From Macrostomum lignano (lineage: Eukaryota), in NCBI GenBank assembly GCA_002269645.1, contig NIVC01000237.1, forward strand, positions 529,153-593,152: a stretch of 64,000 nt of DNA. The letters run 5' to 3'. A model generated the notes under the pieces. That model was not told the origin of the DNA. It did no database searches and saw only the letters and a program-made list of their open reading frames with translations. This document shows, piece by piece, positions 23,645-51,569 of this stretch. A program made the translations under genes and the position numbers. Positions within the stretch are counted from its first letter, which is position 1. Every line of letters begins with the position of its first letter.

Positions 23645-23694
23645 CTTCCGCTTTTTGAATTCCCCAAATTTTCAAATCTTCCGTAACTTTTCCC

Positions 23695-25315: not shown

Positions 25316-28300
25316 ATGCTGCCGGTTGGTAGCGGAGGCGACAGCGGCTCCAAAGACGGCTCCAGCGGCGGCGGCAACGGCGAGCGTCTCTGGAGAACCA
25401 CGGCCCAGTCAATAGACCCTGCTAGAGAGATGACAAAGAAGGTCACGTTTTCGGTGAGCAATTAAAGAATCGCCCTCCAAACCCCCTTGAGAATCGCCCT
25501 CCAACTCCCCTTAAAAATCGCCCTCCAAACCCCCTTGAGAATCGCCCTCCAACTCCCCTTAAGAATCGCCCTCCAAACCCCCTTGAGAATCGCTCTCCAA
25601 ACCCCCTTGAGAATCGCCCTCCAAACCCCCTTGAGAATCGCCCTCCAAACCCCCTTGAGAATCGCCCTCCAAACCCCCTTGAGAATCGCCCTCCAAACCC
25701 CCTTGAGAATCACCCTCCAAACCCCCTTGAGAATCGCCCTCCAAACCCCCTTGAGAATCGCCCTCCAAACCCCCTTGAGAATCGCCCTCCAAACCCCCTT
25801 GAGAATCGCCCTCCAAACCCCCCTTGAGAATAGCCTGTTTTACCTCCATGAAAATCGCCCTCCAAACCCCCTTAAGAATCGCCCTCCAACTCCCCTTAAG
25901 AATCGCCCTCCAACTCCCCTTAAGAATCGCCCTCCAACTCCCCTTAAGAATCGCCCTCCAACTCCCCTTAAGAATCGCCCTCCAACTCCCCTTAAGAATC
26001 GCCCTCCAACTCCCCTTAAGAATCGCCCTCCAACTCCCCTTAAGAATCGCCCTCCAACTACCCTTGAGAATCGCCCTCCAACTCCCCTTAAGAATCGCCC
26101 TCCAAACCCCCTTGAGAATCGCCCTCCAACTCCCCTTGAGAATCGCCCTCCAACTCCCCTTAAGAATCGCCCTCCAAACCCCCTTGAGAATCGCCCTCCA
26201 ACTCCCCTTAAGAATCGCCCTCCAAACCCCCTTGAGAATCGCCCTCCAACTCCCCTTAAGAATCGCCCTCCAACTCCCCTTAAGAATCGCCCTCCAACTC
26301 CCCTTAAGAATCGCCCTCCAAACCCCCTTAAGAATCGCCCTCCAAACCCCCTTGAGAATCGCCCTCCAAACCCCCTTGAGAATCGCCCTCCAAACCCCCT
26401 TGAGAATCGCCCTCCAAACCCCCTTGAGAATCGCCCTCCAAACCCCCCTTGAGAATAGCCTGTTTTACCTCCATGAAAATCGCCCTCCAAACCCCCTTAA
26501 GAATCGCCCTCCAACTCCCCTTAAGAATCGCCCTCCAACTCCCCTTAAGAATCGCCCTCCAACTCCCCTTAAGAATCGCCCTCCAACTCCCCTTAAGAAT
26601 CGCCCTCCAACTCCCCTTAAGAATCGCCCTCCAACTCCCCTTAAGAATCGCCCTCCAACTCCCCTTAAGAATCGCCCTCCAACTACCCTTGAGAATCGCC
26701 CTCCAACTCCCCTTAAGAATCGCCCTCCAAACCCCCTTGAGAATCGCCCTCCAACTCCCCTTGAGAATCGCCCTCCAACTCCCCTTAAGAATCGCCCTCC
26801 AAACCCCCTTGAGAATCGCCCTCCAACTCCCCTTAAGAATCGCCCTCCAAACCCCCTTGAGAATCGCCCTCCAACTCCCCTTAAGAATCGCCCTCCAACT
26901 CCCCTTAAGAATCGCCCTCCAACTCCCCTTAAGAATCGCCCTCCAAACCCCCTTAAGAATCGCCCTCCAAACCCCCTTGAGAATCGCCCTCCAAACCCCC
27001 TTGAGAATCGCCCTCCAAACCCCCTTGAGAATCGCCCTCCAAACCCCCTTGAGAATCGCCCTCCAAACCCCCCTTGAGAATCGCCTGTTTTACCTCCATG
27101 AAAATCGCCCTCCAAACCCCCTTGAGAATCGCCCTCCAAACCCCCTTGAGAATCGCCCTCCAAACCCCCTTGAGAATCGCCCTCCAAACCCCCTTGAGAA
27201 TCGCCCTCCAAACCCCCTTGAGAATCGCCCTCCAAACCCCCTTGAGAATCGCCCTCCAAACCCCCTTGAGAATCGCCCTCCAACTCCCCTTAAGAATCGC
27301 CCTCCAAACCCCCTTGAGAATCGCCCTCCAACTCCCCTTAAGAATCGCCCTCCAACTCCCCTTAAGAATCGCCCTCCAAACCCCCTTGAGAATCGCCCTC
27401 CAACTCCCCTTAAGAATCGCCCTCCAAACCCCCTTGAGAATCGCCCTCCAACTCCCCTTAAGAATCGCCCTCCAACTCCCCTTAAGAATCGCCCTCCAAC
27501 TCCCCTTAAGAATCGCCCTCCAAACCCCCTTAAGAATCGCCCTCCAAACCCCCTTGAGAATCGCCCTCCAAACCCCCTTGAGAATCGCCCTCCAAACCCC
27601 CTTGAGAATCGCCCTCCAAACCCCCTTGAGAATCGCCCTCCAACTCCCCTTAAGAATCGCCCTCCAAACCCCCTTGAGAATCGCCCTCCAAACCCCCCTT
27701 GAGAATCGCCTGTTTTACCTCCATGAAAATCGCCCTCCAAACCCCCTTAAGAATCGCCCTCCAATTCCCCTTAAGAATCGCCCTCCAACTCCCCTTAAGA
27801 ATCGCCCTCCAACTCTCCTTAAGAAATTACGCTCTCCAACTCCCCTTAAGAATCGCCCTCCAACTCTCCTTAAGAAATTACGCTCTCCAACTCCCCTTAA
27901 GAATCGCCCTCCAACTCTCCTTAAGAAATTACGCTCTCCAACTCCCCTTAAGAATCGCCCTCCAAACCCCCTTAAGAATCGCCCTCCAATTCCCCTTAAG
28001 AATCGCCCTCCAACTCCCCTTAAGAATCGCCCTCCAACTCTCCTTAAGAAATTACGCTCTCCAACTCCCCTTAAGAATCGCCCTCCAACTCTCCTTAAGA
28101 AATTACGCTCTCCAACTCCCCTTAAGAATCGCCCTCCAACTCTCCTTAAGAAATTACGCTCTCCAACTCCCCTTAAGAATCGCCCTCCAACTCTCCTTAA
28201 GAATCGCCCTCCAACACCCCCTTGTGAATCACTGAACCAACTCGTACTCAATTATCATGAACCCCACAGCACGAAAGCCAGACTCCAACATCATCGGACA

Positions 28301-30349
28301 ACCTGTACTTTATATTCAATTTCTTCGAGACCATCACTCCGCCTCCGAGCTTTCGCACCTTTAAAGAGGGTTTTCAGCACGTGTCCAAAGTGATGGAGCT
28401 GCATCCGCAGTTTCTCAACGGGCTGCTGCTAAAAAATGTCGAGCCGTTCGGTTTGTGAAAAAAATTAAAACTACCTGATGATATTGGCCTGTAACTAGAG
28501 GCTGCTATCAGATTCTTAGAATCACCGTCCACTTTCTAGAATCACTCTCTAATTCCAAGAATCATTCTTCGATTTCTAGAAACACTGTCTAAATCTTAAA
28601 AAAGCTCTTCGATTCCTAGAATCCCTATCTAATTCTTAGAATCACTCTCTAAATCCTAGAATGGCTCTCCGATTCCTAGAATCCCTATCTAATTCTTAGA
28701 ATCACTCTCTAAATCCTAGAATGGCTCTCCGATTCCTAGAATCCCTATCTAATTCTTAGAATCACTCTCTAAATCCTAGAATGGCTCTCCGATTCCTAGA
28801 ATCCCTATCTAATTCTTAGAATCACTCTCTAATTCCTAGAATCACTTTGCAATTCCTAGAATCACTCTCCAATTCCTAGAATCACTTTGCAATTCCTAGA
28901 ATCACTCTCCAATTCCTAGAATCACTCTCCTATTCCTAGAATCACTCTCCAATTCCTAGAATCACTCTCCAATTCCTAGAATCACTTTGCAATTCCTAGA
29001 ATCACTCTCCAATTCCTAGAATCACTCTCCAATTCCTAGAATCACTCTCCAATTCCTAGAATCACTCGCTAATTCTTGGAATCACTCCCCAATTCCTAGA
29101 ATCACTCGCTAATGCCTGGAATCACTCCCCAATTCCTAGAATCACTCTCTAATTCCTGGAATCACTCCCCAATTCCTAGAATCACTCGCTAATTCCTGGA
29201 ATCACTCCCTAATTCCTAGAATCACTCTCTAAATCCTAGAATAGCTTTTAGATTCCTAGAATCCCTATCTAATTCCTAGAATCACTCTCAAGTTCCTAGA
29301 ATCACTCTCCAATTCCTAGAATCACTCACCACTTCCTAGAGTCACTCTCTAATCCCTGGAATCACTCTCCAATTCCTAGAATCACTCTCCAGTTTATATT
29401 TTTTGGTAATCAAGCACCCTTTATTTCGCCAAGACCCGGCCATCTCTTCATCTCACTCCCCAGACCGATTTCCCTACCTGAGCTACTCGGTTTTTTACGT
29501 GCAGCCGCCGACCAGCAACTTCATTCACGACCCGACCTGGGTGAAGGTGATTCGGGAGGGTCACGGTGACAACCAGGTGCATCATCAAGGTGAGCGATTT
29601 TCTTACATGCATGTGTAAATATTGGATGGCCAACAGTCACTCTATAGACACTCCAATAATCACTCCATAGACACCCCAATAATCACTCCATAGACACCCC
29701 AAAAATCACTCCATAGGCACCTCAATAATCACTCCATAGACACCCCAATAATCACTCCAAAGACACCCCGAAAATCACTCCATAGGCACCCCAAGAATGA
29801 CTCCATAGAACCCCAATAATCGCTCTCCGGACACCCAAAAAATCTCATGGCTTCCTCGTCTCCTGAACAGCCCAAGCTTGGTCTCATTCCATCAATGCAC
29901 CACCCGAATGCTCAGGCGGCTTCAGCGAGCTGCACACCATCTGGATGGACCCGAACGATTCCGGCGCTTCCAACCGCTGCCGACGCCCGTTGTCGCCAGC
30001 CTCGGCCTACATCGTTGTCAGCTGCCGGTTGCTAGGCAACGCCAAACAACTCGAAGCCAACTGGCGCCAATGGAGCGGCGCCGAGTTCATCCTGCGCAGC
30101 CTGCAGCCGCGCCAGCTGTCCAGCCTGAGGCGCATCAGCTTCTACCGCCGGGCCGTGTCCCGCTGCTCCTTCACGCACATCCTGCTGGCCGAGTTCACCG
30201 ACTGCGCCGAGATCTACCGGCTCAGAAACTTCGTGGCTCTCATCAATGCCAGGCATTGTGGAGTGGCCGGCCTGTACACAGTCGAGTCACAGTTCTGCTC
30301 TCCTCAGCTCGCCGAAGATGATCAGCAGGAGCTTCTGGATCAGAACTGA
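25316..30349 (+). CDS. Uncharacterised protein, 4 exons, about 307 aa (possibly the invertebrate DUF7153-like family, unverified)
   Basis: Exons 25316-25453, 28270-28450, 29464-29589, 29871-30349. Donors are GTGAGC, GTTTGT and GTGAGC, acceptors are CAG, phases 0/1/1 are compatible, and the join gives a stop-free 924-nt frame (..LNGLLLKNVEPFGDRFPYLSYSVF..LEANWRQWSGAEFI..LRRISFYRR..). The start codon is the least certain part. Confidence 0.75.
25465..28225. repeat. Intronic minisatellite, 24-bp unit (AAGAATCGCCCTCCAACTCCCCTT), with a 625-bp higher-order repeat
   Basis: Marker variant CCCCCTTGAGAAT(A/C)GCCTGTTTTACCTCCATGAAAAT recurs every 625 nt (track ORF starts at 25824, 26449, 27074, 27699). 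Confidence 0.97.
28495..29392. repeat. Intronic minisatellite, 20-bp unit (AATTCCTAGAATCACTCTCC), with a 60-bp higher-order block
   Basis: The 60-nt blocks starting at 28621, 28681 and 28741 are identical. Confidence 0.95.
29635..29820. repeat. Intronic minisatellite, 23-bp unit (ATAATCACTCCATAGACACCCCA)
   Basis: About 8 copies in the last intron of the uncharacterised gene. Confidence 0.9.
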
Positions 30350-30579: not shown

Positions 30580-32700
30580 AGAATTATGACTCGTTTTTTG
30601 CGACAGAGTCAGAGCGGTTGCGAAAAAGCTGGCAGTGGCCGAGAAAGCAGATCCCAATTAACCCCAACGAAGTGGAAGGGAAGGAGTAAAAGCAGGAAAG
30701 CAGAGTTAGGTGGATGCTGTCTGCAGCTGCAAAGCCAAGAAAGAAGTGGAGCGCTGGCGGCGCAACAGGGTAAAGCTGACAGAAAAGTAGCGGAGAACAG
30801 CGTCCGATCTTCAGCCTCCAAAGGCCCGAATGTCCGAGTCTGACAAGCCGATTTGATGGCAGAAGCTGGCACCCCCTCGCCGGACGCAGCCAGACACGCA
30901 CGAAGGCAGCTGATGAACTGGCTGGCTGAGAGCTCGCCTCCGTGGCCGTAGCCAAAGAGCGGCGTCCTTGAGTCGTTGGCTGGTGGACAGGTGCAGGTGA
31001 GACTGCAGAGCGGTGACTCTTGAACAGGTGGCAGAAGGACGACATGCGGCGTCGACCCGAACTGGTTGGTCTTGGACTTTGGGACTTTGGGACTTTGGGA
31101 CTTGGACTTTGGCAAACTTCCAGCAGCCGGATGAAGCCGATAGTCAGGCCCGCTTCCTCGTCTCGAGAATCTTCTCTTCGGGCAGCGACTTGGTACCGGT
31201 AGCGGTGCCAAGGAAGTCGATGCATTTCGTAGGCCTGACAACCGTGTCCCTTGATGGTAAAGCCGAGGCGCTGCAAGATGTCCAGCAGGCAACTGAAAGC
31301 GGCGAAAGCCTCGGACTCGGATCTCCCAGCGACTGCCCAGCCATCCAGGTAGTTCACCGTAGCAGAAAAGCCAAGCCGGTTCATGTGCCGGGTAACAGCG
31401 GCTGAAAGACGGTGGAAAACTTCGCAAGCAGCTCTGGCGCCGAAGGGAAGCCTGGTGTCGCAGCTAGAGCAGACTGTCCTGGCTGTCCGAGTCAAACCGC
31501 CAGGCGAGGCCGACGAACCCGTAGTCAGCAGGCTTGATTGGCGCGGACCGACCTGTAGGCGCTTTTGAGATCAATCTTGGTCATGTAGTGTCCCGGAAGG
31601 ATATGACGGACCAGCTGCTGGACAGTGCAGTACGTGATGTACTTCTGTTGGTAGTAGCAGTCGTTGACAGACTTGCCGGTCGGATAGGACAGGTCATGGA
31701 TCAAGCGCGGACCCGTCTGTCGGACTTGGGAACGGCGCCGATCGGGTTGACTTTGATTTTTTGAGGTAGCCAAGTACGTCAGTTAAAAGACTTTCAGTGC
31801 TGTCAGGTAGCCGCCGGGAATTTTTCCTTGATCAGCTTTTGCAGGATGATCGAGTTGGCCGCGATCCACTGACCAGCAGAGATACTGGACAGCTTCAGCT
31901 CCTGCTTCCTGGGTGTGAGGGAACCATTCTCCATTGTGGCGATCAACTGCTCCTGATTGGCTGAGCCGGATCCTCTGGCTAGCTTGATGTGGACTCTGAT
32001 CAGATGCAACTTGCGAGTCGAAGCCTGGCAATTAGCGGCTTGAAGCTGAGCCGCCTCCCTCATCCCAGATTCAAAAACCCTCGGACAACTGCAGACCGGC
32101 ATGTACTTTTTGCTCACTTGATGATGATGCTGGCTGAGGCTGAGCCGTCAAGCGCTGCTGAGTGTGAAGCCAGGGACAACTAAAACACTGTTGTCCCTGT
32201 GTGAAGCTGTTGCTGAAGATCCCGACGACGGCCTTCCCGGACTTGCAGTTCAAGCGATTTCACCTCCTGTCGCAGCGCCGCCAACCGATCGCTTCCCGCG
32301 CTCGGAGGCGCCTCTCCCGCGCTGCCGATGCCATCTCGGCGTCCGGAGCAGAAGAAGTCATCTCGGAGTTGTTGAACTCTTCGTCAGCTCGCTCTAAGCC
32401 GAGTGGCGGCAGTGGAAAAGCGCTTGGCGAGCTGTTGTTTGCGGCACGTAGTAGGCAGGCCTCCGTTTCGCAGCTCAGCCTTGAGTTGGCGCACGTTAAG
32501 TCGCTTTGGGCTGGCGGCACTCATGACAGCGGCTGAGCAAAAATTGAAAATGGCTGCCGAGACCGCGGGTGCAGACCGCGGCTTTAAACCGGACGGCCAA
32601 AACCCCTCAACCCCCGCCAGAGTATAGAGAGGCATGTACAGCTGCACCCGCCCCCCCGGCGCGCCTAACACCTTACTCAGAGAGGAACGATTGCAGTACG
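30580..32700 (-). mobile_element. Degenerate, internally deleted DIRS-order (DIRS/Ngaro-like) tyrosine-recombinase retrotransposon
   Basis: Minus-strand fragments in the order gag, RT, YR. Gag: SAP motif (RLNVRQLKAELRNGGLPTTCRKQQLAKRF, ATG 32524) and SISAGQWIAANSIILQKLI. RT: PRLIHDLSYPTGKSVND..YMTKIDLKSAYR, LPFGARAACEVFHRLS..NYLDG and CIDFLG. YR: KSKTNQFG..SPLC..PLF..SQFISCLRACL..GLSDSDIRAFGG*RS. Frameshifts and stops are present. Boundaries are approximate. Confidence 0.88.
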
Positions 32701-33586: not shown

Positions 33587-36500
33587 ATGAGCAAAGCAGC
33601 CGCAAAATCAACCGCACCTGCAAAAAAATCTAAGGCAGATTATGAAGGAAGGAGCAAGCCATCACAAATTCGTGAAAGCAACATTGTGGCGGCAAAGTGT
33701 AAGTTGTATTTTGTATTGGCAAAACATTTTTATTTCGCTTCGTGCCTAGTTCGTGGGATTAACGAATTAAGTGCATTAAGTTTTGAATATTAACTTTAAG
33801 TAACACTCAATACTAAGCAGCACTCAATATGACTCAGTACAATATTATTACATTACAGTGTATTTTATTACCAGCCCCTCTACAGAATAGTGCAGGCACT
33901 TATCCAGAAATTATTGAGAGGCAACCTAATACTATACTTTTAAAGATGCAAATCATCAAAATAAAGCAAAACTATAATAGCAACACCTTTAACTTAGGAC
34001 AGGAAAGGGTTTTATTAAGATTCTAAAAGTTATCGACACCTGTAATTCATTTGTTGTTTAGTTTTTATAATACATATAAAATTAGACTGTCCAGTGAGAT
34101 TACCGTAAGTTGAAAAAAACACGAATTTTAGCAAAAAATGATATTTTTTGTTGGCGTACCAGAAAAAAAGTATTGCACATAAAGAAAAACCAAAGTATAC
34201 CCTAAAAAGTAAAGAACACTGTTGTTATTTAAAAAAAAAATGGAGACAAAACAATGCACTACAATTAATGCGGTGACCAGTCAAAGTGGATACATTTTAC
34301 GGTAACGAATCGCATTGGCTCCATTTTGAAATGAAAATCACATTTCAAAAAAAGTTTTTTTTCCACAAAAGGGTACATTTTAACAAAGTTTCGCTACTAA
34401 TATGCAATGTTCACATTTAAGACAAACCAGTAACTGTATTTTTGAAAGAAAAAAAGTTTTTTTATGGACTATATAAAGCGATAAAAAATTTTGTTGCCCA
34501 AAAAAAGTATTTAGTCGATCTCCGACGCACTAATTCAGTTTAATGTATGAAAGTGGCACTTCATACCAGCCGTTCGCAAAGAACTGCTTGTGCATCGGTG
34601 TTGTCCGAAAAAAGTTATTGAACTTTATATTTTTTATACTTCTACATGTATTTTGCCATTTAAAATAGAAAAAGGCTTGTCATTTTTTTTAAACAGACCG
34701 ACGCAGTTGTATTTGCACATTCTTCGCCCCTATTGAAATGTAAAATAGATGAAACGTGTGCAGCCCACTCATTGTGTGTCCGTTTTGAGAAACTTTTCTT
34801 TTTGTTTTTCCTGCATTCATGTGCATGCAAACTACTTTGTACTACTTACATAGAAAATATGAAAAAAACGAATTTTTCATTACTTTTTAGTTCTTTATTG
34901 CAAAAAATAGAAAGGAGAAGTGAAACTTAATGCAGTCATGATTTATTTCAGCCTTGGGGGTCACTGTGGAGGCTTCCATTGGAAAGCTGCTGAATTTCTG
35001 ACCCCCAGTAATCAGTATATAGCTATCCCAACAAGTGATCCCTGGCAGTCGCCTGGTCAGCGACTCTAACTCCCATCCTACTGCTAAATTGGCCAACATT
35101 TTACGTAGGCAATTTAATTAAGTCAATCTGTATTGAGAAGCATTTTAATTCTGAGCTACTACTACTACTAGTACTATTTATATATTTTTAACAAATAACC
35201 ATTTTATTAACTACATATTATTCAGAGTTACTGAAGTTTTAACTTTAAAAAGTTGAATTTGTCCTTGAGATTCCTTGCAAGTGAGTGACTTTTTTGCAAG
35301 GTCATTTTTTACCACTAATTAAATACCTTTTCTTTAATACTACAAGTTCACTTCTTAAACAATGTCGACGTTTAAGGTGTATTTACATTTGTGGTCCTTC
35401 TTACACTTTAATTTTAAAAGCATTCATAAAATAAAAATAAACGTACTATGCAATTAGAAAGTAGAAGGTATATTGTTTTTCTTTAAGCCATTTGCCCATT
35501 TGTCATTCATTTTTTACACTTAGTATTCAATGAGGCAATGACTCCCGTTTAATTTAATTAACATTTGCTTTTTAATCATCACTGTCCCAGTCGTTGGCCA
35601 GGATGCGAAGGTCGCCGCGAATGTAGTCGCGGTACAGGTCGTAGGGCACCGGCTTTCCAGGAAAGTCGTCAAACTCGACTAGGAAGCGCTGGTCGAGGAC
35701 GTCGCGGCTCAATCCTGGCGTTGGCACCTGCCGGATGATGTAGCCAGCGTTCCATTCTTCATAGTCCGCTACGTCGGAGTCTTCGTCGACGTACGCGAAG
35801 AGCATTTCGATGCGGAGACCGGCATAGAGACGCGGCAGGCCTGATTGCGTGCTGTCTGGCTGGGCATCCGCGCTGGCCTCATCACTGGAGACCGTAGCTG
35901 AAGGCCGGGCGCCGCGACCACGCCCTCGGCCTCGGCCTCCTTCACGCTGGTGTCCTTTGCCACGGCCACGTCCTCTACCGCGCTGCACACTGGCATTGGG
36001 GGGCTTGGCCTTCTTCACTGTGGAGGCAGCAGGTGGCCCGCTCGCTTTGGACAAAATGGCCTGGACGGCGGATTTGACACGTTCCTCGCGAACTTCGGAT
36101 GCCAGGGTCGAGCCGGAATGTGGCGTGGCTGACTGCTGTGCTGCCTCCGTCTGCTGTGCCAGAATTTCCAGAACTTCTTCCAGATTCTGGTGCAGCTGGG
36201 CCAAAGAAAAGCGCACGCCACGAGCCGAGAAGTTAAGCAGATGGCTCTTATCCTTCGGCAGGACCATCTCTGTGATAAATGAAGTAATATTTTTGTAAAT
36301 GTACACTTTTTCCACTTATATCAGACTTTTCTTTGACAAGTTACATAAAGTTACGAGCTTTTTTGGCATTTGTAAATTGTTATGTCACTGTTTTGAATAA
36401 GAAAGGTAACGCAGCTTGCTCAGACTTACTGGTACACTTGTGGAGCCGCAGTTGCGCCTTTATTGCAGTTTCCTGTTCGGCAGGCTGCAGCGATGCCAGA

Positions 36501-39500
36501 TTACTGGCCATACCCTCTGCGGTGCGCCACATGCCTCCGTATGACTCGACGCCACTGATGGTGTTGCGCAGGTTGGCCGCACGCTGCTGCTTTTTGCGCT
36601 GCCTCTCATCGAGCTTGCGCCGCATGAGCTCCTGGCGTCGCTCACGATTCAGGGTTGCCAATCTGGCTGCCCGACTCTCCATCAGCGGCGCAAGGGCCCG
36701 GGCCCGGGTCAAGATGAGGTCCTTCTCGCCCTCGGACTTTTCCCGGAGCCAGTCGGCGGTGCGATTCTGGCCGAACAGGACGGTGGACTCCCTGGCCAGA
36801 AGCCTCATGTGCGGCTTGCCCTGGACTGAGTAGTCTAGTGCCGCAAACATTCGCTCCCCGGCGACGTTGTCCTTCGGTGCCTGTGCAGCCGCGGCTGAGT
36901 CCTCAGTGGAGAGGCTACGTAGGCGGCCGCCGTCAAGGTGGTCTGCCACTTCTCTCTGAAGCAGCACCAACATGTGGGCGCAGATGACCTGGTGTAGAAG
37001 AGAATGAAAAATAGTAGTGGAATTTTTTTCAAACAATTTCATTTATCACTGACACATAACTATTGATGTTTTTGTCTGCTTCTGTTCATAGTCCTAGCTT
37101 TTTTAACTAACCTGAAGGGCTTGGCCGACAAGGCTGTTCTCCTCCAGGGACGCCTCCGCAGTCGTCAGCGCCTCCCAGGAGGTCTGCGCGTCAGCATCCC
37201 GCAGTACGGAGTGCGCCAGCTCGGGGAACGGGCCCTGCAGCTCAACCGATGGGGCGACACTGTCGGCCGAGGCGACGCTCTGCAGCCAACGATGGGCAGT
37301 CTCATAGTGCCGATTCATATCGATCAGCGTGACGCCTGAGTCGCGCAGCAGCGTCCACAGAGGCCGGATGAGCAGCAGGTCGAGTAACCCAAGGGCACGA
37401 CAGCCAGCCAGCAGCACTCCGGAGGCGAGGTCAGCTTCCACCGCAAGCAGCAGGCGGTTCTTACCCTCCGACGCGGACAGAAAGGCCGATAGCACGTCCT
37501 TCTGCCGGTAGAGAAAGCCGCCATTGGGGAAAATCACATAAAGGCGATTCCCTCTGAAGTCCTCCATTCGGAAGGCCGGCTTATCGTGAATCGCCAAGTA
37601 GGACTCCAGCGATGTAAAGACACCGCATTGCTCACTGCCTAGGTGATGAAAGGCCTTGCAAACAGTGCGGATCAGCCGCTGGGCGCCAGACTCTGCCTTT
37701 GACGGGTAAAAACCTGCACACGCAGCAGCGCCAAGGGGCCCCAACGAGGCGCACTTCTCGAAATCGAGCAGCGCCTTGTCTGCAACACCAGCCAAATTCA
37801 CAATGACGTGCATGCCGCAGAAGAGGGCCACCATGCGAGGAGGCGCCGGCGCTCCCTGCCGATCGGCTAGCTGGGAGCGCATGTCGTTGAGCAGAAGCTG
37901 TTTTAATGTTCATTTTTGTACGAAAAAATGTAACAACCGTATTACTTATTATTATTATTGTGTTTCAGTTTACGTTTACTGCCGGCTTGGTTTAAATTAC
38001 TAGTTATATTACTTAAAAGTTTACAAAAATAGGTGTTATAATATTAATAAGTACTAAGTAGTACTAGTAGGGCATTATTATTAATTAAGCAATTAAGTCC
38101 GAGGCCAAACGGCAAAAGGGTGTACAAACGTGAAGGCTTTTGTTGACAACGTGCCGGTCCGTCATCAGAAACTTCAGGGTCATCACCACGTTGCTCTTCA
38201 TTTCCTGGCGCTCCTCGTCGCTGCGATCTCCAAGCGTGAGGGCGCAGTAGTTGTACACCAGATCGTCCATGCTGGCGTCGAACTCGCGGAAATACACTTC
38301 CGCAGTGCCGCCCTCCACCTCACGCAGCGACAGGCAGACGGTGCGGTTGGCGCCCAAGCCAGTGTCAATCTGCAAATTAGTGATTGTAATGTATTGTAAA
38401 TTTAAGAATTACGTATGCATTTTTTAGCAGCAAACATTCCAACTTTTTTACTGCTTTTTGCTTTTAATACTATTGTTGTTACACTTAAACACAGCTGTTG
38501 TAATGTGTTAAACGGGTTGGGTGGTATGGGTTCTTTTTCAGGCTCACCTGGTACTCGGCATAATGACGACCCTTCTTGGAGGTGCCATCAGTCATCAGCG
38601 TCAGCGGGCGATTCGCCAATGAGGCTGCCAGGACGCTGTCCAGGCCACTGGCTTTTGCCAGGCAATTGCCCACGCTGAATGCTGTGGAAGCCACCAGTGA
38701 TTTTGACGGAAGCGGCAAGACAGTGGGGCTCGCATCGAACGACGTCAGCCCAGACAGGACACACCGGATGCAGGGCGAGACATATCGAACCGGGACGTGG
38801 CAGTCCAGGACGAGATTGACGCATGTCTCGATGACCTGGTCGGAAACAGGGTCGTAAAATTGAAACTAAAAGTTAAAATATTTCAATTAAAACATGATAA
38901 TTATCTTGTTTGTCATTGCCATGCTCGCCAATTGTCACGTTTTTTCTTCTATACAGTACAGTTTATAAATTATAGATACAAAAACCACCCAGTTTACAGA
39001 CTAAATGAAAGGAAACAAACCTAAATGAAATTAAGCAAAACAGAGTAAGGCTGTCTTACCCGATTCGTGAACTGCATGCCACCTTGAGAAGGCCGCTTCT
39101 CCATTGTCGCCAGCCCTCTGCCCTGCGCAGCCTCTTCCAGCAACTCGGATGCCTGGTCCAGGCTGCTGTGCAGCTCGTGAATGTGGCTGCGCAGTTCGCC
39201 GACCTGCTTCTTGCTCTTCTGCAGGCCGGCATTGTTGCCGTTGAGCTGCTGTAGGCGGCTGCGCAGTGTCCTATTCGCCTCTTTTAAGCGCAATATTGTG
39301 CGCTTCTGCTGCAGGGCTGCGTCATGGGCCTTGTCCAGACGGTCATGAAGCCGGCGCAGCTGATGGGAAACCACCTTTCGAGGGAGTCGTCTGGCAAGAC
39401 GGCGCTCCAGCCTCTGCTGCTCCTGCTGCTTTTCCAGCAGCTGGGCACGAAGCTCATCGATGATTTCCTTCAGAGCTGCCTCCACGCCCAACTGTTCGTC

Positions 39501-42500
39501 TATGGACATGCCCGACACAGCAGACGTAGCACTAGCAGCAGCAGCAGCACCGCGTCCAGGTGTGGCAGCAGCCTGAGCATCGTCAGTATTGTTGGCATCG
39601 CTGTCATCACTCTGCTGCTGCTCACCACCAGTGATATCACGCTTAGGCGTCACGGACAGCTGCTGTAGCTCCTGCAGCAGAACGTTCGGTACATCCAGGT
39701 CACCCTTGACGTAATTTTCGTACGACGAGGGCTTCCCAGCAGCCACCTCCTCATAGTGGCGCCGACGCAGGACCACAGCATTGCCCCTCTCACGTTCGAC
39801 CTTGCGCAGAAGGGCCTCCTTCGAACGCAAGCTGACAGCTGTGGGGGGAAGGCCCATGGCACGCAGGAGGCGGGTCGCTCGACTGGCGCCATTCTCGCCC
39901 TTGGCCTTGGCTTTATCGACAAATTTGATGGCTCTCTCAATGGAGATGGGGATCAGGCGATCCATTGGACTTGGACAAGTGGGAGTGGGGTCAAGGACAC
40001 GAGGACACTAAACTAAATAAAACAGTTCAGTTGACAATAAATCTGGCAATTGTAGAAAAGCAATTGTAGCTTTTGTATCTTCACTACTTCAGTAGCTGGA
40101 ATGCAGTAAAAAGAGCAGGGGTCAGAAAGGTAAATAATAATTATAATATGTAATTATAAATGGACTAAAATGACTAACCAGTTTGACTTTCACTGTCTCA
40201 GTTACAAGTACAAGATAGTATGAACCCTAGGCCTAGCCTGGCATAGGCCAGCCAGGACTATATATATAGCTATGAGACTGTATAACTATATGTTATAGTA
40301 TAAGTATAATATAATTAACATATATTATACATATAATTATATATAATGAATAATTGTTTCAACTTAACTTCTTGAGAGTTGACTGAAGTCCCCTGAGCCT
40401 AAATGACTATGTATGATATGACTATGAGTCTTGCACGAGTTATGACCATGCCTGAAGACTGAGCCTAAATCTAGTAAATGATCTTTAACTTGTTTACTTT
40501 TAAGGTTAACTTAAATTTAAAATTAAATATACACTTTTGCAAAATAATTGTGTCTTGTGAACTGATGGACAAAATCAAACAGAAAATGTGCTGCAGATAT
40601 GCCAAAAAGCTAAAAAACAGTGATAAAAAGGCAACAAAAAAGTAGAAAATGTTTTCTATAACCTACATATAAAGAAAGAAGGTACACACAGTTGTAGAAA
40701 CAACTGTTTGTCATATAAATGTAAAGTTTCACTGCTGAAACCAAGATATTTTTCAACTTGTAGACAAAAAAGTTCTAAAAACTTGCCCGGATGAGCCAAA
40801 AAGCTAAAATAAGTGACAAAAATAGAGATAAAAAGTTTTTAAAAAATGTTCCACCCTAAATAGAAACTCCAAAATTTATCTATGAGTACAAACCACTGTT
40901 TACCTTTAATTTGCAAAGTCTCACTACAAAAGGCAGGATAGTTTCTAACTTACTGACAAAAGAATTAAAAAATCATGCTCCGGCATATGCCATTTTTTTC
41001 AACTTTTGTAACAACATGTAAGCATATTTTTCATATCCAACCATGTAATGACAGAAAAAGCATGGCAAAAGAAGCAAAACAAGTAGATCTTTGAAATAAG
41101 ACCAAAAGTAGCAAATTTGGACAAAAAATGACTATTTTACACTCTACTAAAGTACCTTTTTTCAAAACTGATATCAAAAAGGGAACAAGCCCATAGTGTA
41201 ATTTTTATATCTAAAAAAACGCAAATTTTGAATCTTTAAATAGCCATAACTTTTTTATCACTTGACCAATCTTAACAATCTTGGCCATTTTGGAAATCAC
41301 TCAAGACCCTCTATCATGCTAGACAAGAAAAAATAGGATACCATAAACTTTAGAAAACTCACTGGACAGCCTAATAAAATATGTATAACTTTTTTTAAAT
41401 TCCGAATCATACCATGGCATAAGTGTAATATAGTATGTTAGAAAAATATAATATTTGCAATGGTATATTATTAATTTTTTTCCTAAATAGTAAAAAAGGT
41501 CATTCAACTTTGCAAGTAAATTTCTTAAGAAAATGTCTATCATAAGTCCCATAGTTCGGCTTGTGTATTAGTGTATGCCAGGTTAAATGCCAAAAAATGA
41601 CAAGATCTTATTTGTATATCATGGTTTGTATGTCAATACAAAATACATATCATTTGACACAATGTATCTGCTATCATGTACCCTAGGATATATCCTGATA
41701 TATATTGAAAAATAGTAAGACTAAGACCTTTGTTTCTAGACTCTAGATAATATATATGTATGCTAGAAAATTCTGGCATACAGAAGGACTTAGAGTACAC
41801 TATTGGTAAACAACTTAGCATATAAAAAGGCCTAGCATCCACATTTCAGATCATATAATAGTAGTATATGCCTGAAAATTTGGGCATGCATTGGCCTTGC
41901 ATGCCAAAATTAGGCATGCACAATTTTCATGTATCACTCCTGAGAAAGAAATATGCATATATACTTAGTATAAAATTTATAGAATCACATGGAAGAGTTA
42001 TTAGGAAGTAGAAAAAAAAATAGAAAAAAGTTAAATTTCAAGCATAAATTTCAAACTTTCCAGTTTTTTCAAGCTTAGAATAAAGCATAAACAAAACTTT
42101 GCATGTATCAATTTTCTGCTATGAATAGTATTGCCAAAAAAGCATTAAAATCAATTAAACTATCTGATAGTAAGGGTATATTACACAATTTAAAAAAGGT
42201 CATTTATTATCAAAACTTAAAAAGGTCATTTATTGTTGCAACACTGGCATTTTTGAGAATGGGCATGCACTAAATTTTTTTGGTGTGCATTTGTAATTAT
42301 TCAATTTTTGTTCAGGTGTGCACCTAGCATGATCTGGACTATGGCCTGGCATGCCTCTTAGTGTATAGCTTGGCATATAGAGATTGCCAAGAGAACAGGT
42401 AGGACCAAAAGTTCTGAGTCCCAATCAATCTACACAATTAGCATATAAAAATATTGGAAAGAATAGCCAGCCCTTTACAAAAAATGAAAAACTAAATAAG

Positions 42501-45500
42501 AAAAACTGGGTTAAACTTTTCTAAGAAATTCAAAGTAAAACAAAAAATAGTTAAAATGAACTTGTTGTATACAGTTTAGTAAAAAATTACCAGTTTTAAT
42601 ACATTAATTTTTCAAGTAATAAAATTTTGCAAGTTGATAATATTGGTCATAATTTATAATTTTTTGGCATATTTTTTATGCAATAAAAAGTTCATTGGCA
42701 TACATGAGCTATGGAAACAATTTTCATTCTGGTGTATAGCTATACACAATCCTGACTATGGCCTTGTTATACACTGAGAAATCCTAGTGTACATGTTGCC
42801 TTCCAAACTATGGCATTAGTCATTTACCCAATTGTTTTACATTTATAAAGCATAGCAAACAACATATTATAAGTCTAAATATAATAGGCATTAAATATAA
42901 AATATATTACTGTTATTTTAACTAGTATATGTATTGCATATATTTCTTCTAGTTCTGGGCATTCCCAAGATTAAAAGGTCAATAGGCCTTCAGTATTTTA
43001 TAAGTCAGCTTTGAGATCTATTTTAGCTCCTTTACTTTAATTTTCTATTTCTCAGTAGTATATATAGTATATGCTCTTTTTACTTCACTTTATTGAAAAT
43101 TAACTAAGTTGAATTGAATTCTCAAAAATTTAATTTTACTTGGGACATTTCTTATTAATAGCTAACTTTGTTATTACTGGCAGGTGAAGTTGGTTCTCTT
43201 TGAAAATTTGAACCCATAATCTTAAAGAAGCTATTTTGTGAATAAATATTCATACATATGCAGCAGGGTCTAGGGCATCCTTGCACCATGTGCATGGGTA
43301 TATAAGAAAGTTTTTGTGTGCCATGCAGTGAAGTTTTTTCTGCATGCAATATTCTACCAATGGTGAGCTATGTAGGTAAAATATATTAAATATTAGTTGT
43401 GTTAAGTAAATTTCATTAAATTTTCAATTTTAGCTGTGGCCTCTGCTATCCGTACTAGCCTTGGTCCACGGGGCATGGATAAGATGGTGAGCTTTTCATT
43501 TATATACATTTGTGAAGCAATTCTGCGACTAATTAGTTGCTTCCTGTATCCTCTATTTGCAGATCCAAGAAGGCAAGGGCGAAGTGACAATTACTAACGA
43601 TGGAGCCACCATCCTCAAGCAGATGAAGGTGATCCATCCGGCTGCCAAGATGCTGGTTGAGCTGTCCAAAGCTCAGGATATTGAAGCCGGAGACGGTACC
43701 ACTTCAGTGGTTGTGCTAGCTGGCAGCATGCTGGAGGCCAGTCAAAAACTGCTGTCTAAGGGCATCCACCCGACCATCATCTCGGAGTCCTTTCAGCGGG
43801 CCGCCGCACGCGCCTGCAACATTCTCGACACTCTGGCCACGCCGGTACGGGTCTCTAGCCTTGATTAGTATATAATAGCTAGTCAAATTAGCTGGTTTGA
43901 TAAAAAAATACAATTAGAGGTCACAGCGCAAGTGAAGGTCATACTAGTGCGTACCGAGGGCGTACAGTGCGATTGGAGGTCATATAGCTCGATTGTGGTC
44001 ATACAGTGCAATTGGGGTTCTTATATGTCGATTGGAGGTCGTACAGTGCGATTGGAGTTCATGTAAGGCGACTGGAGGCCATAAAGTACAATTGGAGGTC
44101 ATAAAGTTCGATTGTGGTCATACAGTGCGATTGGAGATCATAAAGTACGATTGGAGATCATACAGTGCGATTGGAGATCATAAAGTACGATTGGAGATCA
44201 TACAGTGCGATTGGAAATCATACAGTGCGATTGGAGATCATACAGTGCGATTGGAGATCATACAGTGCGATTGGAGATCATAAAGTACGATTGGAGATCA
44301 TACAGTGCGATTGGAGATCATAAAGTACGATTGGAGATCATACAGTGTGATTGGAGGTCCTGCATTGAGATTCAGCTCATTTATTGAAATTAAGGGTCAG
44401 TCAGTACAAAGTAGGAAATAAGATCATCCACCCAGCATAACTCAGGGTAACCTAGTAACGCCTATTCCATTTTAAGCATTAATATGTTACCCCATATAAT
44501 TCCCGTTTAACCTGCAGGTGGACATGACTGACAGGCAGATGCTGATGAAGATTGCGTCCACCTCGCTCAACTCGAAGGTTGTGTCGCAGTACTCCAGCGT
44601 CCTCGCCCCAATCGCCGTCAACGCCGTCTTGTCCGTCTGCGGCGGGCCGGACATCGTCAGCCTGAACGACATCCGCGTTGTGAAGAAACTCGGCGGCACC
44701 GTGGAGGACACGGAGATGATCCCCGGCCTTCTGCTGGACCACAAGACCTGCTCATCAAGCGGTGGAGTCCATCGGATGGAGAAGGCCCGCATCGGCCTCA
44801 TCCAGTTCTGCATCTCGCCGCCAAAGACTGACATGGAGAATACCGTTGTGCTCAACGACTACACCCAGATGGATCGCGTGCTCAAAGAGGAGCGCATGTA
44901 CATCTTGAACATCGTCAAGGAGATTAAGAAGGCCGGCTGCAACGTGCTGTTCATCCAGAAGAGCATCCTGCGCGACGCTGTCAACGATCTGGCGCTGCAC
45001 TTCCTGGCCAAGATGAAGATCCTCGTGGTGAAGGACATCGAACGGGACGAAGTTGAGTTCATCTGCAAGACCCTCAACTGTCGGCCCATCGCCTCTCTGG
45101 ACCATTTCAACCCGGACATGCTGGGCACTGCGGAACTGGTCGAGGAGGTGCAAACCGGCTTGTCTAAGATTACCAAGGTGTGGATTCAATGGCTAATCAT
45201 GTTTTGTGAATGCAATATGGGGTGTGACAGTGACTGCAATATGGGGCGTGTCAGTGACTGCAGTATGGGGTGTGACAGTGACTGCAATATGTGGTGTGAC
45301 AGTGACTGCAATATGGGGTGTGACAGTGACTGCAATATGGGGTGTGACAGTGACTGCAATATGGGGTGTGACAATGACTCTAGTATGGGGTGTGACAGTG
45401 ACTGCAATATGGGGTGTGACAGTGACTGCAATATGGGGTGTGACAGTGACTGCAATATGGGGTGTGACAGTGGCTGCAATATGGGGTGTGACAGTGGCTG

Positions 45501-47813
45501 CAATATGGGGTGTGACAGTGACTGCAATATGGGGTATTCTTCACATAGCTATTCAAATTTTGAAATGTTAGCATGACACCCTATATGCGGTCAGGCCGTT
45601 CGAGAACAATGGCAATTCTAATGATGACATTTACAGACCTGTTTTGACGCTATCTATGAAACAGATTTTCATCCTTGCACTGAAATAAATAATAGTACAA
45701 TATTTTATATTGAATTGTCGGAAGACACAACAGGTAACCGTTGAGATTTAAGCATCCCCTTCCGCTTCCATAATTGCCATATCCCAGGTAACGGGCATCC
45801 AGAACCAGGGCAAGACCATGTCCATCCTGGTGCGCGGCTCCAACAAGCTGGTGCTGGACGAGGCCGAACGCTCGCTGCACGACGCTCTGTGCGTCATCCG
45901 CTGCCTCGTCAAGAAGAAGTGAGTTGAATCATTTTGTTTGTGTTTGCAATAAAGCGCATCGGGTGATGATTAACACAGACCTGTTTTGATGTTCAACTTG
46001 AAAACAGACATAAATTCCGAATTTATGCTGACTCGAAATGCGCTACTGATCAACTATTTATTCCAATAGTTTTTGGATGAGAGGTGCTTTTATCATAATG
46101 ATGATTACACAGACCTGTTTTGAAGCATTAACTGCTGAAAACAACTTTTTACCTTTTTCTGACTATACCGGCACCATGTAATGTACGAGCGTATGTATCT
46201 AGATAGTTTTTAGCTTTAGCCAGTAGCTGACTCAGTAGTACTGTGAGCGTTTTTGCTACATATTTAATCTGTAAAATCTCCTTCCTCAGGCAGCTCATCC
46301 CCGGCGGCGGCGCCCCCGAGATCGAGCTGTCCCAGCAGCTGACCGCCCACAGCAACACCTTGGCTGGCATCGAGCAGTACTGCGTCCGCGCCTTCGCCCA
46401 GAGCCTGGAGATCATCCCCTACACTCTGGCCGAGAACGCCGGCCTCAATGCCATTCAGACCGTCACCGAGCTGCGCAATCGCCACGCCAACGGCGAGAAA
46501 ACTGCCGGCATCAACGTGCGCAAAGGCGCCATCACCAACATCCTGGACGAGAGCGTGCTGCAGCCTCTGCTGGTTAGCACCAGTGCCGTCAGTCTGGCCG
46601 CCGAGACCGTGCGCTGCATACTCAAGATTGACGATGTGGTAAGCAAATTGAGATTGAGTCTGGCTTACAAATGCTCTGATTTTATCGGTCCGTATCATTT
46701 CTTGTTGACCTCTACATAATCCTCCGTATTCTGCAAGTCGCCTCTAGATATCCCCTCTGTTCCTCTAGATATCCCCTCTGCTCCTCTAGATAATCCCCTC
46801 TGTTCCTCTAGATATCCCCTCTGCTCCTCTAGATAATCCCCTCTGTTCCTCTAGATATCCCCTCTGTTCCTCTAGATAATCCCCTCTGTTCCTCTAGATA
46901 TCCCCTCTGTTCCTCTAGATAATCCCCTCTGTTCTTACAAATCATCTCTGTTCCTCCAGATGATCCCCTCTGTTCTTCTAGATAATCCCCTCTGTTCTTC
47001 TAGATAATCCCCTCTGTTCTTCTAGATAATCCCCTCTGTTCCTACAGAGAACCCCTCTGTTTCTCCAGATGATCCCCTCTGTTCCTCCAGATAATCCCCT
47101 CTGTTCCTCTAGATAATCCTCTCTGTTCCTCTAGATAATCCCCTCTGTGCCTCTAGATAATCCCCTCTGTTCCTCTAGATAATCCCCTCTGTTCCTCTAG
47201 ATAATCCCCTCTGTTCCTCTAGATAATCCCCTCTGTTCCTCTAGATAATCCCCTCTGTGCCTCTAAATAATCCCCTCTTTTTCTCTAGATGATCCCCCTG
47301 TTCCTCTAGATAATCCCCTCTGTTCCTCTAGATAATCCCCTCTGTTCCTCTAGATAATCCTCTCTGTTCCTCTAGATAATCCCCTCTGTGCCTCTAAATA
47401 ATCCCCTCTTTTTCTCTAGATGATCCCCTCTGTTCCTCTAGAAGATCCCCTCTGGTTATTGCTCGCGCGTTCACTTATTACTAACTCGAAAATAATGAAG
47501 GTGCCCGTCAGTGAGGCGCCTCCTCGAAGCACGCCCGAGGAGGAGCAGATGAACTGAGCTGCAGATAGATAAGCTGCATCTCAGGCTTATAATAATAGGC
47601 TGGGTAATTTGTCAATGCCTTCTTTTTGTACAGTTTAATGTTGAGTTCGTGCCATTGTTTTGTTCAAAGTTCCGAGTTGGAATTCCAAAATATTGTTGTT
47701 TTGTGTTGAGTTTTGACATTTCTCAACTGCAGTTTTGCTTTTTAAACAAAATTTTTAGAATTTTAATTTCATAACGCCGTCATCATTTTCAGATCCAGTG
47801 TATCCGAGGTTAG
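33587..47813 (+). CDS. CCT4: T-complex protein 1 subunit delta (CCT-delta), 7 exons, about 535 aa
   Basis: Exons 33587-33698, 43434-43486, 43563-43844, 44518-45177, 45788-45918, 46290-46638 and probable last exon 47793-47813 (IQCIRG*). Motifs [66 protein letters not shown] and [10 protein letters not shown]. Confidence 0.96.
34083..41373 (-). mobile_element. Autonomous hAT-superfamily (hATw-like, 7-bp TSD) DNA transposon, 7291 bp, in CCT4 intron 1, antisense to the host
   Basis: Left TIR TAGACTGTCCAGTGAG at 34083. Right TIR CTCACTGGACAGCCTA ends at 41373 (1 mismatch in 16). Perfect 7-bp TSD ATAAAAT at 34076-34082 and 41374-41380. Encloses a spliced DDE transposase gene. Confidence 0.93.
35572..39965 (-). 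CDS. hAT-like DDE transposase, 6 exons, about 1158 aa, with C-terminal RG tract and spindlin-like Tudor domain
   Basis: Exons 39060-39965, 38548-38835, 38130-38369, 37112-37897, 36430-36988, 35572-36269 are GT-AG, phase-compatible and stop-free (3477 nt). Catalytic-type motifs: [10 protein letters not shown] (D), [10 protein letters not shown] (D), FCGMH (CxxH) and [10 protein letters not shown] (E). N-terminal coiled coil. C-terminal [36 protein letters not shown]. Confidence 0.88.
43960..44360. repeat. Intronic minisatellite, 20-bp unit (GATCATACAGTGCGATTGGA)
   Basis: CCT4 intron 3. Degenerate on the 5' side, homogeneous on the 3' side. Confidence 0.92.
45210..45535. repeat. Intronic minisatellite, 24-bp unit (GACTGCAATATGGGGTGTGACAGT)
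   Basis: CCT4 intron 4. Falsely extends ORF 44518..45576 as CDSDCNMG repeats. Confidence 0.95.
46740..47455. repeat. Intronic minisatellite, 22-bp unit (CTAGATAATCCCCTCTGTTCCT)
   Basis: About 32 copies in CCT4 intron 6. Confidence 0.95.
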
Positions 47814-50246: not shown

Positions 50247-51569
50247 ATGTTCGGCAAATTGTTGATGATGGCGACTGCGCTATCAGTGATCTTCATCGCG
50301 GCTCAGGCTGCAGGTAAGCAATATGTTATACCTTCGTAAAGCGGAATTGAGCACGTCAGGCTCTCTAACGAATTGCAGAAACGATCAAAGTCGTGTGGTT
50401 TTCGAAGTCATCGAAGACTCAAAATGAAATTCCAGAGTTCTCTATCCAGCCGGTGAGCGAACCGATTGCGAGCTCTGGCTATAAAACTTTGCCGGGTCGC
50501 AATGAGAGAGACTGCGCGATGAAGTGCGAGTTGCTGGGCAGCCTGGTGTGCTCAGCCGTCTCATTCGTGCGGGAATCTGGTCTCTGCCTGCTGTCTGCCG
50601 TGCGGAATGCCAGCTTCGGAGCTGCTGGCGGCGGCAGCCAGGTGTTTCGGCGCACTGCCGGCGGGCTGGAGCCGTGTGAGTTTGAGCTCCAATCCATTTA
50701 AATTAAGATAATGATTGAATGCCCTCATGCCGTTCTCAGATTTCATCACGATTTCATTTTTATTTAAACAGGTAGCAACTAATTGTTTTCTAGCGTGAAC
50801 TCGAGGATTATAAAAATTCAGTAGTCACCCCGCACTGTTGTCTGAACAACATGATTACACGCAAGACCCCATGACATTGCATAACTAGTGCCTACACTGT
50901 CTTACTAGAAATGTTTTTTTGACTTTCCAGACATCGTGGGCGACAGGGTATTCTACCTGATTCTGCAGCGCCTCAGTGGCAACGTGAGCTTCGCCAGGAA
51001 CTGGACTGAGTACGAGAACGGATTTGGAGACAGCTCTGATTTCTGGATTGGTGAGTCCACATTCGGTTTGAAGTAACCTCTGTTCGATTGTCTTGGATTT
51101 GCTCTTAACCTTCGTTTTGAAAACAAATTGAAAATTTCTTTTAGGTCTTCGCATAATTAACGAGCTGACGGGCAGCACGCCCAGGCTTCTGAGAGTGGAA
51201 GCTGTGACCTGGGCAGGTGTTTTCTCTGCATGCGAGTACACCAACTTCACCGTGGCGGGTGCCAGCACCAACTACGCCATGACCTTCGGTTCGTACATCA
51301 ACTCAAACATGAGCTCGGACTCGCTGACCTACCACAAAGGCATGCAGTTCTCCACCACTGACCGGGATAACGATCATCGCAGCTCTTCCTGCTCTAATAC
51401 TTATGGATATGGCGGCTGGTGGTTCTACAGTTGCTTTATTGCTAACCCGACCGGCCAGTTCCGCTACTCCACTGCATCCGACTCAACAGGCATGATTTGG
51501 AAAGGTGCAGCCACATCGTCAAGCTCAGAACCACTGAAGAGCATTCGGCTTATGGTTCAGCTGGTTTGA
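50247..51569 (+). CDS. Secreted PAN/apple + fibrinogen C-terminal domain protein (FReD/FReP-like), 4 exons, about 302 aa
   Basis: Exons 50247-50313 (signal peptide MFGKLLMMATALSVIFIAAQAA), 50379-50675 (DCAMKC..VCSAVSF..GLCLL, PAN), 50931-51050 (LQRLSGNVSFARNWTEYENGFG..FWIG) and 51145-51569 (YHKGMQFSTTDRDND..C..GGWWFYSC). All introns are phase 1 and the total is 909 nt. Confidence 0.9.

Follow-up and report, generated by a model that had tools for sequence, protein, structure and literature searches.

We analysed a window of 64,000 nucleotides (the whole stretch of DNA considered here) from the flatworm Macrostomum lignano, corresponding to positions 529,153 to 593,152 of the forward strand of contig NIVC01000237.1 in assembly GCA_002269645.1. 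Positions 34083–41373 of the window are occupied by a transposon of 7,291 bp carrying a single transposase gene. A pattern scan located its 16-bp inverted ends, namely, TAGACTGTCCAGTGAG on the 3′ side of the gene (34083–34098, plus strand) and TAGGCTGTCCAGTGAG on the 5′ side (41358–41373, minus strand). With two mismatches allowed, this inverted-end pattern matches the window four times, compared to 0.05 matches expected from shuffled sequences, and two of the four matches are the ends of a second element at 14773–17630. On either side of the transposon, the sequence shows the 7-bp target-site duplication ATAAAAT (34076–34082 on the left and, in identical form, 41374–41380 on the right), which is AT-rich and therefore poor evidence by itself. 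The whole 7.29-kb element is also found on two other contigs of the same assembly (loci L001 and L002), where copies 99.92–99.93% identical to it are embedded in unrelated flanks and bordered by perfect 7-bp duplications of their own, CCTATAA and GTATAAT. The second element, a non-autonomous relative of 2,858 bp with related inverted ends, is enclosed by the duplication ACTCAAG (14766–14772 and 17631–17637), so that a perfect 7-bp duplication accompanies four of four insertions, that is, the three full-length copies and the short relative. Because the three 99.9% identical copies reside at different loci, each within its own perfect duplication, 34083–41373 is a real, autonomous cut-and-paste transposon that has moved very recently; the same copies rule out chance inverted repeats flanking a host gene. 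The initial annotation of the window, made from the sequence alone, had described an intact, intron-containing transposon with terminal inverted repeats and a perfect 7-bp target-site duplication, and this description holds.

Neither blastn nor tblastn found similarity between the interior of the short relative and the autonomous copy; a subterminal segment (17503–17535), compared by eye, resembles positions 41243–41275 of the autonomous element. In both elements, the motif AAAAAAGT(T) recurs subterminally, with the 8-mer present in seven copies in the autonomous element (34099–34800 and 40700–41357) and in five copies in the relative (14789–15200 and 17200–17614). These motifs might be transposase-binding repeats, although the regions in which they occur are AT-rich. 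The empty site reconstructed from 34070–34082 and 41374–41386, ATACATAT-AAA-ATATGTAT, is almost palindromic.

The transposase gene lies on the minus strand and consists of six exons, with all introns bounded by GT..AG and no stop codons within an encoded protein of 1,158 amino acids (aa). Its GC content is 0.58–0.63 in the exons versus 0.28–0.33 in the introns. Exon 1 (39060–39965) encodes an N-terminal region without a zinc-finger signature and a long coiled coil (~aa 155–280), and yields only weak Pfam and PDB matches, all of the coiled-coil type. The first catalytic Asp motif is located in exon 2 (38548–38835; motif at 38598–38569) and the second one in exon 3 (38130–38369; motif at 38171–38139). 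Exon 4 (37112–37897) contributes the CxxH motif (37822–37793), an RGNRxY motif and a mostly helical insertion region, and exon 5 (36430–36988) the catalytic-E motif (36874–36833) and a coiled-coil-like segment. Exon 6 (35572–36269; aa 927–1158 and the stop codon) encodes the C-terminal extension, with an arginine-glycine (RG) tract and a Spin/Ssty-like domain. The gene is bordered by an AT-rich 5′ non-coding or promoter region (39966–41357) and, 3′ of the stop codon, by an AT-rich non-coding subterminal region (34099–35571) that contains recurring AAAAAAGT(T) motifs.

The six stop-free, phase-compatible exons initially annotated thus stand, with the exception of the start of exon 2. Its acceptor is at 38835, 30 nt downstream of 38865; the relatives as well as the closest public protein, P0001, read QFTNR followed directly by VIETC at this junction. 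Because all paralogues and P0001 lack the ten extra residues, we adopted the acceptor at 38835 and a protein of 1,158 aa instead of 1,168 aa. P0001, itself from Macrostomum lignano and 99% identical to the window protein, is encoded on two other contigs of GCA_002269645.1 and has all five junctions, including that between exons 5 and 6 (HKCTK to MVLPKDK). A genome-guided transcriptome assembly underlies the annotation of its source assembly (PMC5730564). Hence, the last exon is joined to the transposase in an independent, public transcript-based model, as had been predicted.

The three full-length copies differ at eight positions across 7.29 kb, and only one of these is coding. The coding difference affects a C homopolymer (~35998–36003, minus strand) which sets the frame of the RG tract and of the Spin/Ssty-like domain and consists of six C residues in the window (C6) but of five (C5) in the L001 and L002 copies. 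C5 shifts the frame just before the RG tract, which accounts for the unrelated C-terminus of P0001. We consider C6 to be the functional state because the frame of the window copy is kept in the paralogues P0004, P0007 and P0064 and in the wider family. The C5 variant could be either a homopolymer assembly error or a real variant lacking the C-terminal domain.

Beyond P0001, a word-indexed homologue search returned only Macrostomum proteins, with 39–50% identity. When searched exhaustively with HMMER, using a profile that covers the core and C-terminus, the family comprised 2,304 cluster representatives at E ≤ 1e-3, of which 1,055 reach E ≤ 1e-10 and 269 reach E ≤ 1e-30; we take 2,304 as its minimum size. 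The named members comprise, among others, one protein from the sponge Dysidea avara and one, labelled 'uncharacterized protein', from the amphioxus Branchiostoma lanceolatum, and public records of family members are labelled 'uncharacterized' or 'hypothetical'. Judging from these sequence matches, the transposase is a member of a large animal-wide family represented in sponge, amphioxus and flatworm. In an alignment of 76 family sequences, the second catalytic Asp (D2) and the C and H of CxxH are invariant, whereas the first Asp (D1) and the Glu (E) are at least 90% conserved. The corresponding motifs of the window protein are LMTDGT (D1, aa 382–391), FLMTDRH (D2, aa 465–475), FCGMH (aa 504–513) and GERMF (E, aa 779–792), in agreement with the initial assignment of D, D, CxxH and E motifs. 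The CxxH motif follows shortly after D2 and is separated from E by ~270 aa, and the protein terminates in a C-terminal extension of ~370 aa that ends in the Spin/Ssty-like domain.

The relative from Dysidea avara (locus L003, OZ014529.1) is an intronless gene for a protein of 1,018 aa, flanked by a candidate 42-nt inverted repeat (90%; 5112–5153 and 9487–9528) which is unrelated to the flatworm ends; a clear target duplication around this inverted repeat was not found. Palindromes resembling miniature inverted-repeat transposable elements are located near this gene, at 3.9–4.1 kb and 10.3–10.5 kb. In two public Macrostomum models, P0003 and P0007, transposase fragments are fused to unrelated genes (a CRAL-TRIO-like region and the name 'protein kinase'); these fusions are probably annotation chimeras around insertions.

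The C-terminal domain (~aa 1074–1150; 35599–35829, minus strand) eludes standard searches. Neither the window protein nor its last 89–91 aa had a match in Pfam, including the Spin-Ssty model (PF02513), or in the PDB, the Macrostomum paralogues likewise had none, and the C-terminus alone, used as query in a word-indexed homologue search, retrieved nothing. A profile built from four Macrostomum sequences placed spindlins on top in the PDB, albeit weakly (E = 0.03), and an hhalign comparison with human SPIN1 reached 74.7%. Many distant family members share the C-terminal pattern LVGxxVxH...W.G.V...Y.V.YD...LL.D...GDL.I. A profile of 17 domains retrieved Spindlin-1, -3 and -4 and spindlin-like 2 from the PDB with E-values of 8e-14 to 8e-12, matching all three spindlin repeats, with repeat 2 as the best one (33.8 bits); the next PDB matches were other Tudor-like readers, namely, SETDB1 (0.004), UHRF1 (0.02) and SAWADEE (0.2). 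The probability in hhalign was 96.8%, with a pairwise E-value of 2.4e-10, and the full-length profile of 76 sequences matched the PDB spindlins at E = 2e-20. PF02513 was matched by 6 of 52 family members (best E = 2e-9), with weaker matches to Agenet and PTM/DIR17 Tudor; P0157 (25.4 bits) and P0161 (27.9 bits) exceed its curated cutoff of 25, in accordance with precomputed annotation. Furthermore, a hidden Markov model of 86 domains, from which the Macrostomum-lineage sequences had been left out to avoid circularity, detected the domain of the window protein over nearly its full length (26.8 bits).

A structure prediction and fold search, which the initial annotation had proposed, point in the same direction. 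The AlphaFold (AF2) model obtained with the 17-sequence alignment (predicted local distance difference test score, pLDDT, 82.5; predicted template modelling score, pTM, 0.67) folds into four strands, then a short helix and one last strand, in keeping with the five-stranded SH3-like barrel of Spin/Ssty domains. Among PDB structures, Foldseek aligned it best with Spindlin-1 bound to an H3K4me3-K9me3 peptide (probability 1.00, template modelling score 0.63, root-mean-square deviation 2.2 Å, 76 columns); generic SH3-like barrels, PWWP domains and the tandem Tudor of UHRF1 ranked next. Collectively, the profile, Pfam (for family members) and predicted-fold comparisons identify the C-terminal domain as a single Spin/Ssty-type Tudor-like domain, which corroborates the spindlin-like Tudor domain initially annotated in this region. 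An uncharacterized PDB protein, 4hr1_A, ends in WDVYAQYARGDFNLLSDDE, close to the last 20 residues of the Macrostomum domain (E = 0.03, 33 columns).

The domain was detected in 89 of the 196 family proteins examined and in 23 of the 28 that extend for at least 300 aa beyond the E motif; P0001, with its frameshift, and a garbled model are among those of the latter that lack it. By these comparisons, it is an ancestral, near-constant C-terminal feature of the family. In SPIN1, the residues F141, W151, Y170 and Y177 form the aromatic cage, and repeat 2 is the H3K4me3-binding repeat, to which the transposase domain is most similar. With SPIN1 numbering verified against the PDB alignments, an aromatic residue stands at the F141 equivalent in 69/90 family sequences, at that of W151 in 73/90 (mostly with an additional W before it), at that of Y170 in 77/80 and at that of Y177 in 50/76, and the D184 equivalent is Asp in 71/73. 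Thus, the cage and the acidic positions of SPIN1 are largely kept family-wide. In the window copy, the four cage positions hold Y, W (displaced by one residue), F and V, so that the cage is only three-quarters canonical, with valine in place of Y177; the fourth position is F in the nearest relatives P0004 and P0064.

The RG tract, initially placed at about 35911–35982, is indeed present there (minus strand, aa 1023–1046), 27 aa upstream of the reader domain. It is shared only with the Macrostomum-lineage relatives P0007 and P0064, whereas other family members have a K/R/E-rich linker in its place. From this distribution, the tract is a lineage-specific addition rather than a part of the conserved module. 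Because of this confinement, the switch in which the methylated tract would occupy the transposase's own Tudor cage, as the initial annotation had envisaged, gains no comparative support; it is possible for the Macrostomum lineage. As a linker, the tract probably binds nucleic acids or serves as a methylation substrate.

Taken together, these data lead us to favour, by a modest margin over doubt, the interpretation that the element is a recently active transposon with a putatively hAT-like core, in which the Spin/Ssty-type reader would dock on methylated histones and bias integration. Under this scenario, the domain would anchor the transposase on methylated histone tails, with an H3K4me3-type mark as the most plausible candidate, given that the domain matches spindlin repeat 2 most closely. 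The transposase is likely oligomeric, given its coiled coils, and would probably present several readers at once. Docking would then tie the transpososome to chromatin in a particular state, or license it there, and direct integration preferentially to promoter-proximal DNA. The logic would parallel that of chromodomain-guided retrotransposon integrases and of the PHD finger of RAG2.

The genomic context of the insertions fits promoter-proximal integration, as an anecdote from four sites. The window copy lies ~1–2 kb upstream of a gene for a CCT chaperonin subunit (second recognizable exon at ~43.56 kb), the short relative is inserted between the 5′ ends of a divergent pair comprising a 10-formyltetrahydrofolate-dehydrogenase-like gene and a tetratricopeptide repeat (TPR) gene, and the L001 copy is situated between a PARG gene and another gene, the two pointing away from each other; the L002 copy is within a kinase gene. 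Three of the four insertions are thus intergenic and within about 2–4 kb of gene 5′ ends.

The origin and role of the domain can be construed differently. Its location in the last exon, behind a low-complexity tract, and the blindness of Pfam to it in the window protein itself might suggest a fragment of a host gene recently captured by the Macrostomum element, through transduplication or exon shuffling, and irrelevant to function. However, relatives from sponge and amphioxus, whether intronless or with introns, have the domain in the corresponding place, as does the great majority of C-terminally complete members (23/28), and the profile devoid of Macrostomum sequences still detects it in the window protein. 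Recent capture is accordingly highly improbable, and we reject the derivation from a host spindlin fragment given the conservation of the domain across phyla. Less easily dismissed, although still unlikely in our estimation, is a role other than guiding integration, be it allosteric or RG-based regulation, recruitment of methyl-arginine partners of the Sm or PIWI type, or mainly oligomerization or stability. Spindlin repeat 1 is a reader of methyl-arginine, the RG tract lies 27 aa upstream of the domain in the Macrostomum lineage, one cage aromatic is absent from the window copy, and copies with an out-of-frame domain exist, all of which would suit such a role. Yet most family members that keep the domain have no RG tract, so that an RG-dependent role cannot be the conserved function, and the cage, together with the equivalents of D184 and D189, is conserved family-wide, which speaks for a peptide-binding reader over a structural module. 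Several further observations weigh against a transposase that reads histones and thereby biases its integration. The Foldseek E-value for this small domain is just 0.11, and the AlphaFold model built with the 4-sequence alignment has a pLDDT of 54 and was uninformative in the fold search. The transposase has one domain compared to the three packed repeats of spindlins, and the cage of the window copy may be weakened by the valine at the Y177 equivalent and the tryptophan that is off by one. The reader domain is out of frame in the two other genomic copies, which, if C5 is real, would mean that copies without the reader still spread, possibly mobilized in trans. Finally, four insertion sites statistically prove nothing. 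The same side of the balance includes the hAT component of our interpretation, which is carried by motifs and not by profile matches.

The initial annotation classified the transposon as hAT-type, a label that is supported by the D, D, CxxH and SERxF motifs but not by any Pfam or PDB profile match. As in hAT elements (Ac, hobo, Hermes, Tol2), the ends are short inverted repeats starting with TAG, a single transposase gene is present, movement is by cut-and-paste, and the core has D, D and CxxH motifs followed, beyond a long insertion, by an E in a SERxF-type block. The E-region block of the family, VPKTNxxSERDFAxLDxxxRxKP...E...NNKT, appears to resemble the classic hAT C-terminal block, and a CGLH motif occurs soon after D2. 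Unlike hAT elements, this one makes 7-bp duplications, lacks a BED finger and any match to the hAT families of Pfam or to transposases in the PDB, and encodes a transposase with a long N-terminal coiled coil and a ~370-aa C-terminal extension with the reader domain. The hAT-related Pfam families (PF05699 dimerization, DUF659 and DUF4371) were not matched by the window protein, its paralogues or 18 + 52 family members at thresholds of E ≤ 1–10, and zf-BED gave no match either; the N-terminal 150 aa are devoid of a Cys/His pattern. Hermes is the solved hAT transposase and, like the P-element transposase, would be expected in the PDB; nonetheless, a core-only profile of 11 sequences produced zero matches there at E ≤ 10, Hermes and P-element included, the full-length profile retrieved no hAT, Hermes or P-element, and the 76-sequence profile returned only spindlins and coiled-coil noise. 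The UniProt name of P0004, 'DUF659 domain-containing', was discarded because the Pfam rerun gave no DUF659 match.

These negative results, which extend to P0004 and, for the 18 + 52 members, to all hAT-related families including BED even at E ≤ 1, would be expected if our description of the element and its reader is right and the transposase nevertheless represents a separate, unprofiled DDE lineage or superfamily of the C/DxxH group (hAT, P, Kolobok, Mutator). The 7-bp duplication found in 4/4 insertions, instead of the 8 bp typical of hAT, would agree with this alternative, as would the N-terminal coiled coil without a zinc finger, which is reminiscent of the P-element architecture. On the other hand, some hAT lineages generate duplications shorter than 8 bp, and the 7-bp duplication is therefore compatible with hAT. 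The E-region block and CGLH after D2 fit the hAT signatures better than those of P (D(2)H) or Mutator (ESxN), and the ends begin with TAG, like many hAT ends: the element tips are TAGAC, TAGGC and TAGGG, with a full fit to YARNG in the short relative only. For the P-element/THAP9 superfamily, which the 7–8-bp duplication and the coiled coil had brought into consideration, the Pfam families (THAP and P-element transposase) are unmatched as well, and the family has C(2)H where D(2)H would be required. A literature search for hATw, the lineage to which 7-bp duplications had been attributed in the initial annotation, gave unrelated papers or none. Weighing motifs and their spacing against the silence of the profiles, we lean moderately towards a hAT-like core over a separate lineage of the CxxH group, and regard the non-hAT alternative as the lesser, albeit substantial, possibility.

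Fusions of a recombinase with a chromatin reader in mobile elements are known mainly from long terminal repeat (LTR) retrotransposons. The present transposase resembles SPIN1 in its type of reader domain and differs in that the domain is fused to a transposase. With the chromodomain integrases of chromoviruses (Ty3/Gypsy) and with the Tudor-carrying Gypsy-10_Ec32 of Ectocarpus, it shares the combination of a recombinase and a C-terminal methyl reader of the Royal superfamily, which in those elements is thought to direct integration to a chromatin state; those proteins, however, are LTR retrotransposon integrases, whereas here a DNA transposase carries a reader of the Spin/Ssty type. The Ectocarpus element was reported in Genome Biology in September 2025 as, to its authors' knowledge, the first transposable element with a Tudor domain (PMC12477816). 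In our literature search, with Repbase and Dfam entries lying outside it, transposases were not connected to spindlin or Ssty domains in any paper, in line with the initial annotation, which was aware of no characterization of this module. Overall, the principle of coupling a recombinase to a chromatin reader is known, but a DNA transposase equipped with a Spin/Ssty reader, and broadly distributed across animals, appears to be undescribed.

A functional analogy can also be proposed with RAG1/RAG2, in which a transposase-derived DDE enzyme with a CxxH-type core is coupled to H3K4me3 via a reader, the PHD finger of RAG2. In the RAG system, which is domesticated, this PHD finger resides on a separate subunit, whereas in the flatworm element the putative reader is a Tudor-like domain within the same polypeptide of a live transposon. 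In the boldest version, a pan-metazoan transposon family with its own spindlin-type H3K4me3 reader would integrate beside active promoters and would be a live, single-polypeptide counterpart of RAG1 and the RAG2 PHD finger, a proposal that we find rather doubtful; the further step, that vertebrate spindlin genes share ancestry with the transposon domain, is less likely still.

The Macrostomum element is not a one-off, given that the Spin/Ssty reader is conserved in a family of thousands of cluster representatives, from sponge to amphioxus, the catalytic core of which is covered by no Pfam model. If the domain guides integration, the family would offer a natural case of cut-and-paste transposition directed by a chromatin mark and a testable parallel to the H3K4me3 coupling in V(D)J recombination, and transposon vectors might gain a small module for targeting. 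Judging by the near identity of its copies, the Macrostomum element may still be active, and because Macrostomum lignano can be made transgenic, such experiments are feasible.

The remainder of the window contains host genes, which we recognized from translations, and repeats. The 10-formyltetrahydrofolate-dehydrogenase-like gene, with aldehyde dehydrogenase and formyltransferase parts, is at 6800–13100 (minus strand), the TPR protein is encoded at 19490–19915, the CCT chaperonin subunit at 43533–46720 and a fibrinogen-related domain at 51195–51570 (all three on the plus strand). A pair of gag- and protease-like open reading frames (60278–62225, minus strand) and a reverse-transcriptase-like fragment (30584–31495, minus strand), also identified from translations only, look like retrotransposon remnants or copies. 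In addition, the window contains long tandem-repeat arrays with spurious long open reading frames in many frames, the largest of which spans ~3 kb (~25400–28400), with further arrays at 7400–7900, 13400–13900, 19850–20450, 23500–24450, 43900–44300 and 45200–45570.

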